Made by a program: the position numbers and the translations under genes | The notes under the pieces: generated by a model | Told to the model about the DNA's origin: nothing | Databases searched by the model: none | Seen by the model: the letters and a program-made list of their open reading frames with translations, nothing else | Part shown: piece by piece, positions 21 to 61,466 of the stretch | Position numbering within the stretch: position 1 is the first letter of the stretch | Layout: every line of letters starts with the position of its first letter | Origin: Kudoa neothunni | Lineage: Eukaryota; Animalia; Cnidaria | Assembly: GCA_964304625.1 (NCBI GenBank) | Contig: OZ199838.1 | Coordinates: 12,205,553 to 12,269,552, forward strand | DNA: 64,000 bases | Direction: 5' to 3'

Positions 21-2338
21 GATGACAGCACTTACTTTTTTTCGATTCATTCCAACAAGTTAGCCTCGGTGAACCTATTAAAAAGTAAACACTTTTGTTA
101 TGCTTATATTTATCGTATTACTTTTATATGAACCGCTGGAACTTATTATAGAAAAGCTTAACTGGATAGTAAGGTTAGACTCTCATTTGTTCTCAGTCGG
201 ATTACTGGACAGCCGAGAAAAACTGGACGTTAGGCGCCTAACAGTGAACTTTGTTACCGAGCGAATCATGCAAGAAATCATACTACGTGTTGAAAACAAG
301 CAGAACCTTGAAATGTTCTCTTCATTAGAGTTTGTGAAAAACAATTTGATGTAATTCCGCATTATCTTTGATTACGCGTGTAAGCTAATATTTTCATGCA
401 GAAACGTAGAAATATTGAGGGATTCGAACGGAGTGAAGCTCTTTTTTGATTCTCCTGTAAAGGTAATAGATTGAGGATGAGTGTTTTTGATCAACAGCGA
501 TTCAGGGAGACGGTTGTAAACCAGCCGGCCAATTTGGAATCCAGAATCAAGCCTGCGACAACCACATAGTTACTGCCGACACTGTTAATGAAATGAGTCA
601 ATCTGTTGGTTATCTTCTCGCTTTGCGAACCAACGGCACTGATAATAACGACGAGGATAGCAGGTCTACCAGTGAATCACATGAAATAACCCCATCCAAA
701 GGTACCCTTAGGAATGTTGAAGACCCAGCAAAAGTGCTATTGTTATACAGGCAGATGATTAGATTTATGACTCGCTTCAAAAAATATGCTATCAAATATA
801 TACCCCTTTCCGAGAATTTGGCTGATTCGTTCATCAACTACAGTGCCCTTATAATGTTGGGATACACATTGATGTATATATGCAGAACTATTGGTCATAC
901 TTGGGGTAATAAATTGCCATCGTTGATTAAATCGAATCTGATCAAATCTTGCTATCCTGAAAATGGCAGTGTAATCCAATTTCTCAATATGGAGTTCAAT
1001 GTGGATGATCATCTTAATGATGTGGCATCAGTTTCAAACACCAGCAAACTAACCACATTCAAAGGATTGTACAAAAATAAACCTGTTGTGATTCGTCGAT
1101 ATGAGAACAATGTTCAATGCGATGGAAATCAAATCCTTATGCCTTCATCAACGTTCAGCCACCAATTTCACGTTTCAAATTCAGTTCCTTTCAACAAACA
1201 CATTGTCAAATTTGTGGGAAGTGAAATTGGTGTACGATATTCGTATCTCATGACGGAGTTGTATTCTTACAACTTGGAACAATTTTTTCAATGCGAGCAC
1301 TCATCTGATGTCCTTGATATTAAGACCAAAATCAATATGCTGTACCAACTTATGAAAGGAGTGAAACACCTACATGCCAATCGATTTGCTCATGGCGCCC
1401 TTATACCAAAGAATATTTTGGTTGATCTCGATAGAAATACAAAACAATTGCGTGTGACCATCTCTAATTATAGTAAAAGTCATGTTCTCGACGCTTCTAT
1501 CACTACGGCTGATTGCGTATCCACGTCAGCAGATCCAAATGATAATTCACCAACAAAGAACATTAACGGTAACAACGTCCGTTCTACAGACAAAGACTAT
1601 TTCAATTCTAACACACCCATACTCAGCGAAGCTCTAAAACACAGTACCAATGATATCTACGAATTTGGTATGCTAGCAATCTACATTATGTGCAATGGAA
1701 CGCTTCCAACTAATTGGGTCTGGGGCAGCAACCATATTCCATCTCGTCCTCAAATCGAATCCCTTCTAGGGACTCATTGCAAATCAGTGGCGCACGAAGT
1801 TATTGATCTGCTTACTAAATGTTTTTGTCCCAATCTTGCTTATCGCATTTCAGCCAATCAGCTGATTAATCATCCCCTATTTTGGAACTATGAAAAGAAA
1901 GGATTGTTCATATCTGAAGTGAGCAACCACATCGAAAATTTAGTTCCAGGGCATTACGTTCTCAAAAAATTGGAGCGAAACTCGTGTGATGCAGTGAGAG
2001 GAAATTGGGCCGACATGGTCAGTGCTGATATCATGAAAGATGTCACCAGACATCGAACCTATCGTGGTGATAGTGTCAAAGATTTACTGAGAGTTATTCG
2101 AAATAAGGTATTTTTGGATAAAAATCAGCTGTTTATAACAACTATTTTTATTTGTTAGAGAAATCATTTTAACGACACATGCTCAGAAGTGTCCAGTAGA
2201 TTCGAGTCTGCCGATCAACTCACCGAATATTTCATACAATTATTCCCAAAACTGATCATGCATGTTCATAAAGTCATTAGAGAATGCAATAAAAATGATA
2301 TCCCCAATTTGGCAAAGTTCTTTGTCGGGGTTGTGTAA
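21..2338 (+). CDS. IRE1: IRE1/ERN1-like ER transmembrane (pseudo)kinase-endoribonuclease, 5' end outside window
   Basis: GT-AG introns 85-151, 351-401, 463-505 and 2108-2158 join into one frame. The product has a luminal-type segment (..KLNWIVRLDSHLFSV..), a TM helix (SALIMLGYTLMYIC), a kinase fold and a KEN/RNase domain (HPLFWNYEK..RTYRGDSVKDLLRVIRNK|RNHF..YFIQLFPKLIMHV). Stop TAA at 2336-2338. Confidence 0.9.
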
Positions 2339-14143: not shown

Positions 14144-16230
14144 ATGTCAGAAGGAGCGGGTTACGATCTCGAAAAATGTCAGAAAAAAGTTTTGCAATGC
14201 AAGATTGCTATTGACAATCATCTTCCTCATCAAAAACCATTAACCGCTAAACATAAAGATGGAGTTATTTTGTTGTTGACCAGTGAGCATGTTGAATGGA
14301 CTCAATGGAAAAATAACATTTTACTTCATTCAAAAAATTGTGTTAAATCAGATTGTTTACTTGGAATCGCATTGTCGGGAAACAAAGATCGAAACAAAAT
14401 TCTCAAAGTAATTTCAACTCAATCATGTTATCGTTTGATTGAGTTGTTTATTGGAACATGAAACTAATTTCTGTAAACCTATAGTACAATGTTGTGGGAA
14501 ACATTTACAAAATATATTGGAAACAATTAAAACAAGGAACACTGTGTGTTTGTTTCAAAAACCCAGCCGCAACCGTACGAGTTATGAGCGTAATTATTTT
14601 CTAATAGATTACCGCTTTAATTTTGCTACACAATAGAGTGACTCTATGGTTTTGAGAATGTTGGTATCGTTTATAGCCTATTTGGACAATTATAGCGATA
14701 ACAATAATCCCACATTTTTGAAGTATTTTCAGTTGCCCATCAAACAAATTCTAGAGTACATGGGGAGGTTTTATGAGGAACAGAAAAATTTATTTGTAAG
14801 GCCTTTTATAAACAACCCTGGAGAGGTGGTATTAAGCTGTGATTCCATTTCTCGCTACCCATGGTCGAATCCCCTGCCCTGCAACTTGGAATCCTTACAA
14901 CTTTTTAATTGTTGGACTGGAAAAATTACAACTGACTATATATCCGATCTAGTTGATCTCTCTGCTCAACGCAAATGGATTCAGTGCGCTTGTAGTTGTT
15001 GTGTCAAATGTAATAGAATAAAACCTTCTTTAAAATTGGAAGGCGAGCAAGAACGTACCAATTATTATTTTTATTCTAATATACTACTGGTGTATAGATC
15101 AACGTGAAATAAAAATATGTCAATTTCAAGGCCCTCTTATAGACTTAGGAAGAATCTACAGACAACTGAATAAACTTTTGAACACCCATGGTGGACCGAA
15201 AATATTAGATACAACCAAATTGTCAGCTTTATTTACACAAATTCTAACAGATGGTTCTTACAGGCACATAAAAAATTTATTCCGTGATTCCACTTACTGT
15301 AGGGGTGAATACACTTGCAGGTCCTCACAACCTAACATAGATGTGCCTGTAAATTTTGCTGACACAAGAATAAACCTGCTGTATAGACTTAAAAATATTG
15401 AATTCTACAAGATTCCAATACAACCGCAGCTAATGGCAGATTTTCGAAAGTTTTCCTATCTTCAACAACTTCATTTGGTGAATTGTAACATACGAAAGTT
15501 ATCTCCCATTATATTTTTCACTCTTCCGAAATGTGAGGTATTATCATTGGCTGACAATCACCAATTTTCTGTCCTACCCCCTAGTATATGGGGAATGGGA
15601 AAACTCAATACGTTAATACTTGCCAACACTGGAATTCAATGTTTGCCTCAATCCATTATTCACTTGAAGCATCTTCAAGTACAAACAACTTAATACACAT
15701 ATGTATAATGTGTGTAAACGTATAGAATATTGACATCTCGAATTGCCCTGTGAAATACTTTCCTGTGCTATATAGAAGATACTCATGTATTAATGTTTCT
15801 TCGACAGATATTTTCTCCACAGCATCTGCCCCACACACAATAATTTTAAATCAAAACATTGGTCCTGTTACCTCATTGAAAACTCTCGCCTGGTCACACA
15901 TTGTCTCTAATTGCTCATCAATGTAACTTTTTTTATATTTTATTGTTTCATTCGGTTTTGGATCATAGCTTTTTACAACATTTGGTGAATATTATCCCCA
16001 GAGCATTACTCAACGAAGTTGCATCGCTTGATTGTTGCATTAAATGTTTAAAATTCACCAATTTAAATACGGTTACCAGCTATTGTGCTCCAATTCCCAA
16101 TGTAGCCCGTGAACTGATTTATTCAATAAATCCATATTTTTCTAATCGCACTGTCTGCTTTAGTAGACATTTCTGTTCAGTCGATTGTAGTATACGTTGC
16201 AGAAATGTTCGTACTTATTCAAACGTCTAA
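14144..16230 (+). CDS. leucine-rich repeat protein with Cys-rich C-terminus (LRRC58/63/28-like tail)
   Basis: LxxLxLxxN/C repeats (LQQLHLVNCNIRKL, CEVLSLADNHQFSVLPPSIWGMGKLNTLILANTGIQCLPQSI). Tail VTSLKTLAW..IPRALLNEV..CCIKC..FCSVDC. Overlapping ORFs can be joined by short GT-AG introns. Confidence 0.7.
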
Positions 16231-37250: not shown

Positions 37251-38827
37251 CTACAGCGTAGAGGATGTTTTTAGTAATTTCTTGGCAAAAAATGGATTAT
37301 TCATGTACACATGGATATTCTTCTTGAGATCGTGTGAAAGTAATTTTCGTAAAACTGCTAAAGACTTGGTCAGCTTAAGAATATATCTAAAACGAAAATC
37401 GAAGTTGTAAGCAAACAAATCATATATTAAGCGCAAAATACTTTTCGTTAGTAGCAGGTAAATCCTGCATCGAGCAATTCAATATTTTTTCTACTTCAAC
37501 CAGCCGATCATAATCATGAGGGGATATCAAGGTGATGCTGGTACCGGCTCTACCTGCTCTGCTGGTACGTCCCACGCGATGGATATAATTGTCTGTAGCT
37601 AATGGCAACGAGCTAAAACCAAAATATAATGAATTCTGAGCGTGTTTTACAATAAAACAAATAGACAGTTGGTTACTCATTGATAACTAAAGTAACATAA
37701 GGAAGATCCAATCCACGACTGGCCAGATCGGTACAAACCAATATCTGAGTGAGACAACTTTTGAATCTGCTGTAGGAGTTATTTCGTTTGGCCTGTGGCA
37801 TGGCGGAATGAAGAGTCGATACACGGAACGAAAGTTTAGATAAAAGTTCGTATAGAATTTGACAATTCCAACAACTGGAAGTAAAAATAATAGCTTGCTT
37901 TGTGATTTTTTCTTTTGGTGTTTGAGGTATGCGAGTGGATTGTTTGTATACTTTGGTGACGTTCAACTTCATTTCAGGTATGTTTAAAAAAAGCTGCAAC
38001 AAATGCACCAAATGAGCATCTTTAGCAATTGGTGGTACTATGCGATAGTACTGCTTCAATGTGTCCACTGTTGACACGCTAAGTAATGATCAATAAGATG
38101 GGCGGAAAATTGAGAGTGTAACACATACGACGTAGGTTCTTTCCAAAAAAAGGCATTTAAATTGTCCTGTGTATTGATAAAATTTTTCAGTGTCTCCGAG
38201 AGAGTTGCACTTAAAGCTACTATCTGAAACTGATTCTTTGGAGGTAAATGTTGGATAATTTCCGCAATACTATCCAGCATTTCACCCTCTTCCAACAACA
38301 TATCAGCCTCATCCAGTACAAGCATCTTTATGTTTCTAAGAGTGTAGGCATGCTGAGGATCTCTTAATAAGATCTTTAGACGACCTGGAGTGGAAACAAC
38401 TATGTGCGGTTTGTCAGCCAATTGTACACCATTATCCACTTCACTTATACCTCCACTACAGGTTAACACTTTCACTCGAATACCGCTCCCTAGGGTTGTG
38501 AATTGTTCGGCTATCTGTGCAACTAATTCTCTAATAAAAAGTATTATTATGTGCCCATGGTTAATAATACTCATATTAAAACTACCTAGTTGGTGCCAAT
38601 ACCACTCCAAACACACCAAACATGTCCCTTGATAATATGCTCAACATTGGAATCACATAACATGCTGTTTTTCCGGTTCCTGTTCGTGATATCACTATTC
38701 CGTTTTTTCCATCCATTATATTGGGCATACATTCACGTTGTACTTGAGTTGGATTGTGCATTCCAACCGCCAACATGTGATTTTCAATAACTTTCGATAT
38801 TTTAAAAATTTTCCAACCATCACTCAT
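37251..38827 (-). CDS. DDX49: DEAD-box RNA helicase DDX49/Dbp8
   Basis: PTQVQRECMP, TGTGKT, DMFGVFGVVLAPTRELVAQIAEQF, TPGR, DEAD, SAT, SRGLD, HRVGRTSRAGR; 5 exons, 4 GT-AG introns. Confidence 0.88.
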
Positions 38828-48347: not shown

Positions 48348-50165
48348 CAGTAGGGTCTCGATATTGCGTGAGTCGATACGGCGTAATTAAAGATTTTTGG
48401 TTCAATCAAACTCAAAATTACCGAAATCGACGGTCTCGCTATTGCGTGGCGTTTTGGATAAAATAATCCGATGAATCCTATATTTGACCCCCCCCCCCCC
48501 CAAAAAAAATTAATGGTAGGACGATCTCAGAGAAGCATAGAAGAAAAAAATTTAATATTACGACTCGATTAAAACAATAGCTGGGGCAAAAATGATGACA
48601 ATGAAACATTTTAACCTGCCAAATAATGACTAGATTTTGGTTTTCGATAAATCAGGATAGGAAATTCCTCTCTCGATAGAATATTATCAAAAAAAGATGA
48701 ACTTATTAGTTCAAATGTCTCAATTGACCGAATACGAGTTTCACGGGGAAAATACACTCAGATTGAAAGTGAGTTGTATAATTGGATAGTTAGCATGCGA
48801 GAAAAAAAGAAAAACATCTCAAAATTTATAATTAAAGAAAAGGCGATGCTTATAGCACATGATCTTCATGTCAAAGATTTTCGTTCCAGTAATGGGTGGT
48901 TTTGTAATTTCAAAAAACGGTTCAGTTTGAAAAATCAAAAGCTTCACGGCGAGGCATGTAGTGCGAATGTGATGGCATCTAATGAATGGATTGGACAATA
49001 TTCGGATGTAATAAGTAATTACAATAATGAAAATATATTTAATCTTGACGAATTTGCTCTTTTTTAAGAACAACTTCCCAAACGTACTTATCGTATTTAT
49101 ACAACAAAAGGCGAAATCGAATTGAGGGGTTGTAAACGATCAAAAAAAGAGTAACCGTGTTGGTAACTGCATCATTGGTTGAAGAAAAACTTTCGCTTTA
49201 TGTTATTGGTAAGTTTCAAAAACCACGTTGTTTTAAAGGGGTGAATGATTTCCCTTGCAAATATTTCTCTCAAAAAAATGGTTGGATGTCAGCGGCTATT
49301 TTCTATGAGATACTAAAAGATTTGGACAACAAATTTTTTAGAGAAAGTAGAAACGTTCTTATGTTATTAGATCAATGCCCTTCTCATCGTTAATCAATTA
49401 ATTCATTTACAAACATCAAATTATTATTTCTCCCAAAAAATACCACCAGCATCGTCCAGTCAATGGATCTCGGTGTTATTAATAGTCTTAAGGCAAACTA
49501 TAAGAAAATATTGGCCCAAAATCTTATATTTGACGACGATGCTACAAATGTTCCGAAATACACCATATTAGATTGTCTAAATACATTAAACAATGCTTGG
49601 GAAACAGTTATTAATTCAGTTATACTAAATTGTTTCAAAAAATCTCCTATTTTCGGTAGTGATAGTTTTGTTGATTTTGAAATATTTAATATACATACAG
49701 AAAAATCATTAATTGATTCGAATTATGAAAACCATGAAATTGTTGACGGTATTAATTGTTGCTTATCTGGTTTGATTATATTACATGACCTCGATGACGT
49801 TGGCGCTATGGAAGAGGCTGAAACTGCTCATGATGATGCATCTTACAACTCCAACACAAGCAAATTAAATAATTCTATATGTACTGAAGACTCCGATTTT
49901 GATTTGGAAAAATAAACAGTTTCAACGAAACAACTAAAATCCTCGATCAGCACAATTAGAAGGGCCTTTATAGCTGAAAACCTTCAGCTTTGCTCTCTCT
50001 ACGTCCTGTTATGGATCATTTATACGAAATATTTAAAAAACGTGAGAAACAAACTAAAATAGATAACCATTTCATCAAAAAATCAGAATATTATTTGTAT
50101 GTGAGCGTGCGGGAAGCCTCGATATTGCGAGTGGCCTTGTCATTGCGTGGTAGAATGTTGCCCGT
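48348..50165 (+). mobile_element. Tigger/pogo (CENP-B HTH + DDE_1) transposon, pseudogenised, 3' TIR missing
   Basis: TA|CAGTAGGGTCTCGATATTGCG; FRSSNGWFCNFKKRF, LHGEA, IFNLDEFALF, GKFQKPRCFK, NGWM, LLDQCPSH, MDLGVI; stops and frameshifts; repeated ctcgNtattgcg subterminal motifs. Confidence 0.9.
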
Positions 50166-59288: not shown

Positions 59289-60085
59289 GCTTTAATATGC
59301 CGAAAAAAAAATAAAGCAATGTTAGAGAGATGATCCCTAGGATGACAATTAGGCGAGCTTGAGGGAGAGTTATCATAGATATAAAGCTGTGTATTTTTAC
59401 GTTTAAATTATTTCATTATTTGCAATATTAAAGTTATTCTTTTATATTTGTTGGGTCTAAACGTCAACAGTCCAAGTTGGTCCAATACATCAGCTTTTAG
59501 TGCAAACCCACAGAAAATCTCCTTAAATTCAAATATTTGGCCAAATTCTAGCTTGGGTGAATGTGCACACATTCATTAACCCTAATGGCTAACCATTGGA
59601 TTCACGCGTACACCTTTCAATTATTTTGCAGTAAAACTTGATAAAGTTTGGATAGTTTCCCCAAAAGTTTAACTAATTTTATTATGTCAGTCTATAGATA
59701 AAACTTTTAAAAAAAAAAGGGTGAAATTGCGCCGAATATACATAAAATATAACGAGTTCAACAACAAAATTTATAAACATAATAATATAAGGATGGACGC
59801 GTCTAGCCAAAATTTATCTTTTAGAGGTTGACTGATATAAACCAGCAACGCGGCGCATAACTGGACATCGTACAGTGGAAAACCCGTTTGGCGCACTTTC
59901 CAGTACACATGCGTGACGTTAAAGTTTTATGTTAAGCTTTTTTATCTCGGTTTTTTCAAAAACTGTTTTGTAAATACTTCTATAATAAATAGAAAAACTG
60001 TTCTTTCGTTTTGAACATGTTTATTTAAAATTTTAACATAAATTCTGCTCAAATTGTTGTGTTCCCAAATCTCATAAAAAATAAG

Positions 60086-60097
60086 TGCGCGTGCGCA
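60086..60097. promoter_or_regulatory. NRF1-type palindromic site TGCGCGTGCGCA
   Basis: Matches the YGCGCAYGCGCR consensus on the minus strand, ~37 bp upstream of the DBR1 ATG in very AT-rich DNA. Confidence 0.5.
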
Positions 60098-60133
60098 TAT
60101 AAACTGAAATCCATCTTATTTTTTAACGACTCG

Positions 60134-61466
60134 ATGGATAGTAAAAATCGTGTAAATATTGCAATTCAAGGATGCTCGCACGGGGAGTTGGACAGAATTT
60201 ATCGAGAAGTTGCATCATTGGAAGAAAAAAACAATTGCAAAATAGATCTCCTTTTGTGTTGTGGTGATTTTCAGTCGATACGAAATCATGCAGATTTAGC
60301 CTGTATGGCAGTACCTGAGAAGTATAAGAGAATTGGTGATTTTCAAAAATATTATTCAGAAGAAGTGAAAGCTCCAGTGACAACTGTTTTTGTGGGTGGC
60401 AATCACGAAGCGTCAAATTATCTTTGGGAGTTACCATACGGGGGTTGGGTAGCTCCTCGCATATTCTATATGGGTTATGCCAATCGAATTATCTATAAGG
60501 GGATACGTATAGGAGGTGTGTCGGGTATATACAAAAGTTACAGTTATAATTGGAATCATTTCGAGAGACCTCCATTCACCTCTGAAACTCTGCGGTCTTT
60601 TTATCACAGTAGACATATGGACAAATTTCGGCTTGGGTTGTTGTCATCTGGAACTACAGACATATTTGTTTCACATGATTGGCCAACAGACGTGTATAAT
60701 TTTGGCGACATGGGTTGTTTGTTGCGTTGGAAACCATTTTTCAAGGACGAAATATCAAAAAATATATTAGGGGACCCAAATAAGTACGACTTGTTGAAAA
60801 AGCTTTCACCAAAGTATTGGTACTCGGCTCATTTACATTGCGATTTCGAGGCCAGAATACCTGTGTCGAATGACCAACAGTGCACTTCATACACTGAATT
60901 TTATTCTCTTGATAAATGTCGATCAAAAAAACGTCCTCTTAAGTTATTATCCATTGAGTTAACTGAATCGCAGTTATCAGCTTATACGGATGATAGTTTG
61001 TATTATGACTTACAATGGTTGGCCATTCTTAAAAAAACGCAGTCACTTTTCCCATCCACCGTTGACAAATATAAGCCCGCCATCCCATCTGATGAATGTG
61101 CAAAAGGTTACGCCCCTACGGCCGAAGATATTGCTGAGGTTTTATTTTTCGCTGATTTTATAGGGATTTCATTTTATTTTTGGTTAGGTGACAACTCTGC
61201 TTCGCGGCGAAGTGAAAATTCCAACAAATTTCAAACCGAGTGTTATGTATGAAAGGGATGGTGATACAGTGAATACAGTTAAAATGCAAGACGTGTATCC
61301 TCTAGTCAACTTTCAAACGGTCGAGTTTTGTGAGAAGCTTCAAATCGATAACCCTTGCTGTCTGGCACCTCCTCCTGCAGAGGTTGTCAATGATGACCTC
61401 AGATTAACTTCTAATGAACCTCTTGAAAAAATTGCGTCTAATCCTGATGAAATTGATTTATCATAG
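60134..61466 (+). CDS. DBR1: RNA lariat debranching enzyme
   Basis: GCSHG, CGDFQSIRN, GGNHEASNYL..YGGWVAP, SHDWP, SAHLH, ALDKC-like SLDKC; one intron at 61139-61187; C-terminal NPDEIDL. Confidence 0.95.

Follow-up and report, generated by a model that had tools for sequence, protein, structure and literature searches.

The 64,000-nucleotide stretch analysed here (the window; Kudoa neothunni assembly GCA_964304625.1, contig OZ199838.1, positions 12,205,553 to 12,269,552 of the forward strand) opens within a gene for IRE1, the sensor of endoplasmic reticulum (ER) stress. We consider it likely that this gene encodes a type I ER-membrane IRE1 that keeps the sensor, the membrane segment and the RNase, and that is activated by assembly without phosphotransfer. 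The findings point to an animal stress response that does not depend on the kinase activity of IRE1. A wider reading, which we hold tentatively and at somewhat less than even probability, is that the sole IRE1-XBP1 pathway of an animal lineage combines a pseudokinase devoid of phosphotransfer and of nucleotide binding with an RNase whose cleavage preference has shifted together with the XBP1 loops (UNG/AAGC and ANG/AAUU, the slash marking the cut). The initial annotation of the locus had proposed an ER-membrane RNase activated without kinase chemistry, and this proposal is supported by the predicted signal peptide, the weakly matching luminal motifs, the dead kinase, the kept RNase and the presence of XBP1-like and RtcB genes.

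The segment 593–2338, on which that annotation was centred, lies within the last two exons of a 12-exon IRE1 gene of approximately 958 codons, the start of which is located 4.3 kb upstream of the window. The 12 exon lengths total 2877 nt, a multiple of three corresponding to 958 codons plus the stop, every exon/intron border is GT..AG, and the introns comprise ten of 33–67 nt and one of 3246 nt. All searches were run on individual exons, and the length stated for the protein was obtained by adding up those of the exons. An exhaustive protein search yielded one close relative, P0001 (548 amino acids, 36% identity, E 8e-54), which is encoded on the 3650-nt contig L012 of Logan SRR31175926; word-index protein searches, whether started from exon 11 or from P0001, returned no close relatives. 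Contig L012 is extremely A+T-rich and has introns of approximately 34 nt, and P0001 as called begins at an internal TTG, the actual gene running upstream beyond the contig. The parts of the K. neothunni gene, with positions in the window unless another contig is named, are as follows.

L004 4735–5775 (G000:C1:12201287-12202327), upstream of the window: exons 1–7, from splice-site reading
L004 5776–9021 (window −3224 to 21): intron 7, 3246 nt
22–84, forward strand: exon 8, luminal domain, reading ..DSTYFFSIHSNKLASVNLLK, placed by its AG/GT borders and fit of phase
85–151, forward strand: intron 8, 67 nt, GTAAAC..TATAG
152–350, forward strand: exon 9, luminal domain, 49% identity over 67 amino acids to L012 859–1068, E 2.9e-22
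351–401, forward strand: intron 9, 51 nt, GTAATT..TGCAG
402–462, forward strand: exon 10, luminal domain, NVEILRDSNGVKLFFDSPVK, 55% identity to L012, E 7e-6
463–505, forward strand: intron 10, 43 nt, GTAATA..TTCAG
506–2107, forward strand: exon 11, with the luminal end, the hydrophobic segment, the pseudokinase and the first two thirds of the KEN domain, from the open frame, Pfam and IRE1 structures
827–895, forward strand: candidate transmembrane segment, SFINYSALIMLGYTLMYICRTIG, the hydropathy maximum of exon 11
1040–1870, forward strand: pseudokinase domain, from alignment to yeast, coral and myxobolid IRE1
1871–2107, forward strand: first part of the KEN domain (HPLFW.., R486/R488, Y490, R503 N504 K505), PF06479 at 2.9e-15
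2108–2158, forward strand: intron 11, 51 nt, GTATTT..TGTTAG, dividing RNK from RNH
2159–2338, forward strand: exon 12, with the remainder of the KEN domain including the catalytic His (2165–2167), Pfam PF06479 at 3.8e-8, profile positions 74–119

The long open frame spans 593–2107 when counted from its first ATG, and the TAA stop codon occupies 2336–2338. Exon 8 is 67% identical to a collinear exon on L012 (E 8e-8), where the splice sites and reading phase of intron 8 are also kept. The acceptor of intron 10 is the sole one that joins exon 10 in frame to the long open frame, and P0001 reads RNKKNH uninterrupted at the point where intron 11 divides the motif. Intron 7 corresponds to approximately 34 nt on L012, and its extra length may be an insertion. 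The initial annotation had described a frame open across four introns. Four introns are indeed present in the window, but only one (2108–2158) lies inside 593–2338; the count of four arose because those at 85–151, 351–401 and 463–505 are also in the window, upstream of 593. The ATG at 593 is read as an internal codon and not as a start. The upstream open reading frames give seven collinear matches between the IRE1 locus and L012 (31–67% identity, E down to 2.9e-22), and these homologous frames rule out a short, sensor-less IRE1 that starts at this ATG.

Directly before the KEN domain, exon 11 encodes a kinase fold (Pfam Pkinase 7e-13, partial). The closest solved structures are those of yeast IRE1 (8.5e-23) and human IRE1 (1e-21), with a continuous alignment over residues 155–505. 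The motif columns were read from an alignment (A1) with the coral, Thelohanellus and Myxobolus IRE1s and from a separate alignment to yeast IRE1, and they bear out the motif losses recorded in the initial annotation. The columns of the GxGxxG loop read SVSNTSKLTT, with zero glycines, and VVIRR at 1084–1098 aligns to the VAVKR of yeast, coral and myxobolid IRE1. HRDLKPxN is replaced by HGALIPKN at 1391–1414, ISNYS at 1460–1474 aligns to ISDFG, and the APE column reads TDKDY, such that GWIAPE has become RSTDKDY. The activation segment (~1475–1650) is, as had been noted, long and rich in S, T and N; it is also rich in D and exceeds that of normal IRE1s by approximately 20 residues. In addition, the αC Glu column carries Phe, six kinase motif columns being altered in all, and each of the five motifs by which we judged a competent kinase (GxGxxG, VAVK, HRDxKPxN, DFG and APE) is changed. 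The catalytic-loop Asn and the αF Asp are still present. The domain is classified as a pseudokinase, with the fold predicted to be kept and the chemistry lost.

The adjoining RNase presents the opposite picture. PF06479 (Ribonuc_2-5A) matches both exon 11 (2.9e-15) and exon 12 (3.8e-8), each above the cut-off. The two RNase motifs pointed out earlier are in place, RTY at 2054–2062 (with the Tyr at 2060–2062) and RNKxxH as RNKRNH, assembled across the intron from RNK at 2099–2107 and RNH at 2159–2167. RHRTY aligns to yeast RYRKY (R1039, Y1043), and RNK/RNH aligns to RNKYHH (R1056, N1057, H1061). The R..Y and RNKxxH residues are kept in K. neothunni IRE1 as well as in P0001, and the IRE1 RNase is probably retained and working.

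The degeneration of the kinase is shared with P0001, in which the corresponding motifs read AAICR, HGNLSCQN and LSDFK. In both proteins a KDYFN block stands in the APE position and an insert of 10 residues follows β3, and the pseudokinase folds are 34% identical to each other. From these shared features we infer that the degeneration of the kinase predates the split of the two lineages and that the fold has persisted in each of them. Nearly all of the ~150 best IRE1 relatives keep HRDxKPxN, DFG (or DMG), VAVK and GxGxxG, and within this set the total loss of the kinase motifs is confined to K. neothunni IRE1 and P0001. The myxozoans Thelohanellus kitauei (KII74567.1) and Myxobolus squamalis (KAF1743564.1) have ordinary IRE1 kinase motifs. 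Two further IRE1-like proteins are partly degenerate, one from the bivalve Sinanodonta woodiana (KAL3837646.1, P0053; HGN/SSFA with RNVDSH) and one from the plant Rumex salicifolius (KAL8160467.1, P0138; HGD.S/SEIG), and both are probably paralogues.

The asymmetry between the two cytosolic domains is also evident from pairwise identities:

K. neothunni IRE1 against coral, Thelohanellus and Myxobolus IRE1: kinase 17–18%, KEN 41–43%
Thelohanellus against coral IRE1: kinase 46%, KEN 35%

In K. neothunni IRE1 the kinase part is by far the more diverged of the two. Synonymous sites are saturated against the sole close relative, at 36% protein identity.

The genome comprises 40.26 Mb in 4 contigs, and a six-frame search of it with PF06479 matched a single locus. 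Searching the genome with Thelohanellus IRE1 returned this locus (residues 458–784) and otherwise generic kinase domains, with no second KEN region. The gene is identified as the single IRE1 orthologue of the genome. A regulatory paralogue operating beside a canonical IRE1, which had been offered as one possibility, is disfavoured because this is the sole KEN locus in the genome. The natural loss of one of the three IRE1 modules has a parallel in Arabidopsis IRE1C, a paralogue beside IRE1A/B that lacks the luminal sensor (PMC6788458, PMC6883098); K. neothunni IRE1, by contrast, appears to keep the sensor, loses the kinase chemistry and is the sole copy.

In a tree of 124 rows, K. neothunni IRE1 and P0001 are sisters (100% support in the Shimodaira-Hasegawa-like approximate likelihood-ratio test, SH-aLRT) on very long branches. 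In an approximately unbiased (AU) test on 40 rows under LG+G4, a clade with the Thelohanellus and Myxobolus IRE1s had a log-likelihood (lnL) 11.2 better than that of the free tree and is not rejected (p-AU 0.70), in keeping with a myxozoan affinity of the gene. A very long branch would also be expected of a decaying gene that has lost both activities and whose open frame survives as a remnant or a mere scaffold. Yet the reading frame runs uninterrupted through twelve exons and 958 codons in a region of ~30% G+C, two species whose proteins share just 36% identity both retain the KEN motifs and the catalytic residues of the RNase, the luminal exons are conserved, and the substrate and ligase genes described below are retained. 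We regard decay as highly improbable.

The N-terminal half of the protein appears to have the layout of an IRE1. Exon 1 (MMLQHRYMCFLFLLAIIK..) is hydrophobic and reads as a signal peptide. A profile derived from the luminal regions of 70 IRE1 relatives matches exon 2 (LIVSTIEGSLLIIRKLDGKILLNLK) through the motif llvsTlDGslhAvdrstGeilWtlk (independent E-value 1.2e-4), and gives weak matches to exon 7 (RteYtlsiyd, 0.011) and exon 8 (0.14, profile positions 208–224); the three matches fall in collinear order. Pfam gave no match on the luminal exons, and BLASTP of single exons against coral IRE1 found nothing significant. The candidate transmembrane segment at 827–895 is preceded by a basic, amphipathic-looking stretch, and the helix at the corresponding position of P0001 is far more hydrophobic.

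A pseudokinase fused to a KEN domain invites comparison with RNase L, the logic of which the initial annotation had ascribed to this gene. RNase L is cytosolic, its N-terminal ankyrin repeats bind 2',5'-oligoadenylate (2-5A), and its pseudokinase still binds nucleotide. The comparison stands as an analogy, since in both cases a pseudokinase is fused to a KEN RNase and dimerisation rather than phosphorylation would be used, but it extends no further: K. neothunni IRE1 has a predicted signal peptide followed by a probable IRE1-type luminal domain, Pfam found no ankyrin family in any of its exons, and the nucleotide-binding residues look lost. Of the two proteins to which alignment had been suggested, IRE1 matches at 8.5e-23, whereas RNase L matches at 1.6e-7 and in the kinase part only.

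The pseudokinase might nevertheless be switched allosterically by a bound nucleotide or other small ligand without phosphate transfer, in the manner of RNase L or of ADP-activated Ire1. Yeast Ire1 is activated by ADP binding (PMC7904763), and the conservation of the fold between K. neothunni and P0001, the remaining catalytic-loop Asn and αF Asp, and the D-F of DFG and the αC Glu that P0001 retains would be compatible with a switch of this kind. However, the glycines of the Gly loop are all gone in both species, the β3 Lys is Arg in K. neothunni and Cys in P0001, K. neothunni has Asn for the DFG Asp in addition to the Phe at the αC Glu column, and the ligand residues differ between the two proteins. 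We therefore think it unlikely that a ligand switch operates here, and favour activation by assembly.

The partners expected of an IRE1 RNase are encoded in the same genome. A gene of several exons encodes an RtcB with the motifs GGVGFDINCGVR, LGAGNHY and HRKGATRAFP. At G000:C3 (L009) lies a bZIP gene whose basic region, KLKNRISAQNSRERRRK, is XBP1-like. The gene contains the following element:

L009 1822–1863 (G000:C3:3938954-3938995): twin hairpins with 7-nt loops, stems of 7 and 5 bp, and G at loop position 3

The first hairpin reads UGUAAUU(UAG/AAGC)GAUUACA and the second UAUCC(AAG/AAUU)GGAUA. In the known XBP1 intron, the splice sites likewise lie within 7-mer loops of short stem-loops (PMC12530127). 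Cuts after the G at loop position 3 of both hairpins would free 23 nt (L009 1832–1854), and without them the bZIP coding sequence would continue in a second frame, open from 1827 onward. Beyond a conventional intron of 50 nt (2040–2089), a third frame is open to 2465 and ends in ..GDELFHELCPSYLFNQ; this end of the shifted tail, ..DELFHEL.., is reminiscent of the end of vertebrate XBP1s. Twin hairpins of such a layout occurred in 46 of 5000 dinucleotide shuffles of the XBP1-like gene.

The same 23-nt intron is found on the relative's contig L019, the protein of which is 57% identical. The hairpin block is identical at 47 of 51 nt (92%), compared with 67% for the bZIP part and 49% downstream, and the changes on L019 inside both loops are restricted to position 2, where the consensus allows any base. 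Downstream of the intron both frames are open in K. neothunni and on L019. In the unspliced frame, a hydrophobic stretch, MVLMLNMLGFLTSAV, follows right after the intron (L009 1855–1910) and is kept on L019. Such a stretch is a feature of vertebrate XBP1u, where it forms the membrane-targeting region. Rfam gave no match on the XBP1-like region, and the protein atlas placed the XBP1-like bZIP in generic bZIP clusters only. We also considered CTGCAG and TCGCAGC (L009 1910–1931), which resemble the human XBP1 sites; these are 15 nt apart, form no hairpins with 7-nt loops and are not conserved on L019, and they were rejected. The suggested search for an XBP1 with dual CNGCAG stem-loops recovered twin stem-loops and a frame-shifting intron, but with loops that are non-canonical.

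These loops bear on whether the RNase might serve solely for mRNA decay, as in the regulated IRE1-dependent decay (RIDD) of fission yeast, or act on some other target, the XBP1-like hairpins not being a substrate. The non-canonical loop sequences would fit this view, and Schizosaccharomyces pombe provides a precedent of an IRE1 without a HAC1/XBP1 intron (PMC12530127). Against it, the twin hairpins with their 23-nt spacing coincide exactly with the opening of the second frame, the hairpin block comprises the most conserved nucleotides of the XBP1-like gene, the loops of the relative vary at the free position alone, and the dual coding is conserved. The likeness of the shifted tail to vertebrate XBP1s points the same way. 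An RNase devoted to decay alone, which had been raised at the outset, is probably not what the gene encodes because a conserved XBP1-type intron exists, and we rate an activity directed away from the XBP1-like hairpins as quite improbable.

Taken as a whole, the protein resembles canonical IRE1 (yeast Ire1p, human IRE1alpha/ERN1 and the Thelohanellus and Myxobolus proteins) in its predicted signal peptide, weakly matching luminal motifs, candidate membrane segment and kinase fold fused to KEN, as well as in its R..Y and RNKxxH residues, its occurrence as one gene per genome and its association with a twin-hairpin XBP1-type partner and RtcB. It differs in having no Gly loop, β3 Lys, HRD Asp, catalytic-loop Lys, DFG or APE, in the insert after β3 and the longer activation segment, and in the low identity of the kinase domain. 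The closest functional parallel is an engineered one. Yeast Ire1(D797N,K799N) has no phosphotransfer, yet it keeps the RNase and splices HAC1 (Rubio et al. 2011, PMC3082176; Le et al. 2021, PMC7904763); its activation is possible without ADP capture, and it is slow to switch off (PMC3082176, PMC7904763). The same two residues are replaced in both natural proteins, by Ala/Ile in K. neothunni and by Asn/Ser in P0001. By analogy, K. neothunni IRE1 is the natural counterpart of this mutant, from which it differs in being natural, lineage-fixed and far more degenerate, including in the nucleotide-binding elements. A phosphotransfer-free mechanism appears feasible because the yeast mutant splices HAC1.

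For activation by assembly we infer every step of the following mechanism. Under ER stress the luminal domains would assemble and thereby bring the cytosolic pseudokinase-RNase modules together, the pseudokinase acting solely as a dimerisation scaffold. The paired KEN domains would then cleave both hairpin loops of the XBP1-like transcript and release the 23-nt intron. RtcB would ligate the exons, and the resulting frame shift would exchange the C-terminus for an acidic activation tail. In this scheme trans-autophosphorylation would be excluded from the switch, and nucleotide binding probably would be as well.

Several observations weigh against this interpretation. The loops UNG/AAGC and ANG/AAUU of the presumed substrate differ from the canonical CNG/CNGN, both of them at −3 and +1 and the second one also at +3, all positions at which the yeast and human enzymes depend on a fixed base (C at −3 and +1, G at +3). 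The luminal homology to IRE1 appears real but weak, consisting of weak profile matches and collinearity, and the segment at 827–895 is only weakly hydrophobic (1.35 on the Kyte-Doolittle scale in a 19-residue window). The exon 6/7 junction, with a 33-nt intron and weak sites, is uncertain, and we are unsure of the position of the gene among the IRE1s given its long branches. Three metatranscriptome runs with the species label yielded 0 reads on 6 kb and hence provide no test, and a DNA run merely re-covers the assembly. A homodimer prediction for P0001 residues 100–515 scored 0.00, was made without controls and speaks neither for nor against binding.

Four other features were recognised in the window, each by sequence match:

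14646–15693: open reading frame of a leucine-rich repeat (LRR) protein
38056–38619, reverse strand: DEAD-box helicase exon
49463–49915: DDE_1 transposase fragment
60059–61252: open reading frame of the lariat debranching enzyme DBR1

Among ER-stress sensors, IRE1 is the most ancient and the best conserved, and debate over what its kinase does has gone on for two decades. Work with engineered mutants and with ATP-competitive ligands suggests that the RNase can be switched on without phosphotransfer, but that phosphotransfer matters for its shut-off. A search of the available literature for myxozoan IRE1 or the unfolded protein response in myxozoans, and for a natural pseudokinase IRE1, found nothing relevant. 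A naturally kinase-dead sole IRE1, accompanied by a sensor, an RNase, XBP1 and RtcB, would make the role of the kinase testable in an evolved system. Should the pathway run without phosphotransfer or nucleotide binding, it would be natural proof that kinase chemistry is dispensable for IRE1 activation. Given the slow shut-off of the yeast mutant, the dead kinase also raises the issue of what has replaced phosphorylation-dependent shut-off in K. neothunni IRE1. The altered XBP1 loops offer a second handle, on RNase specificity, and if the cleavage preference has shifted they would represent enzyme-substrate co-evolution at an unconventional splice site. Myxozoans are extremely reduced cnidarian parasites of fish, and in K. 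neothunni a core signalling module would have been simplified rather than lost.

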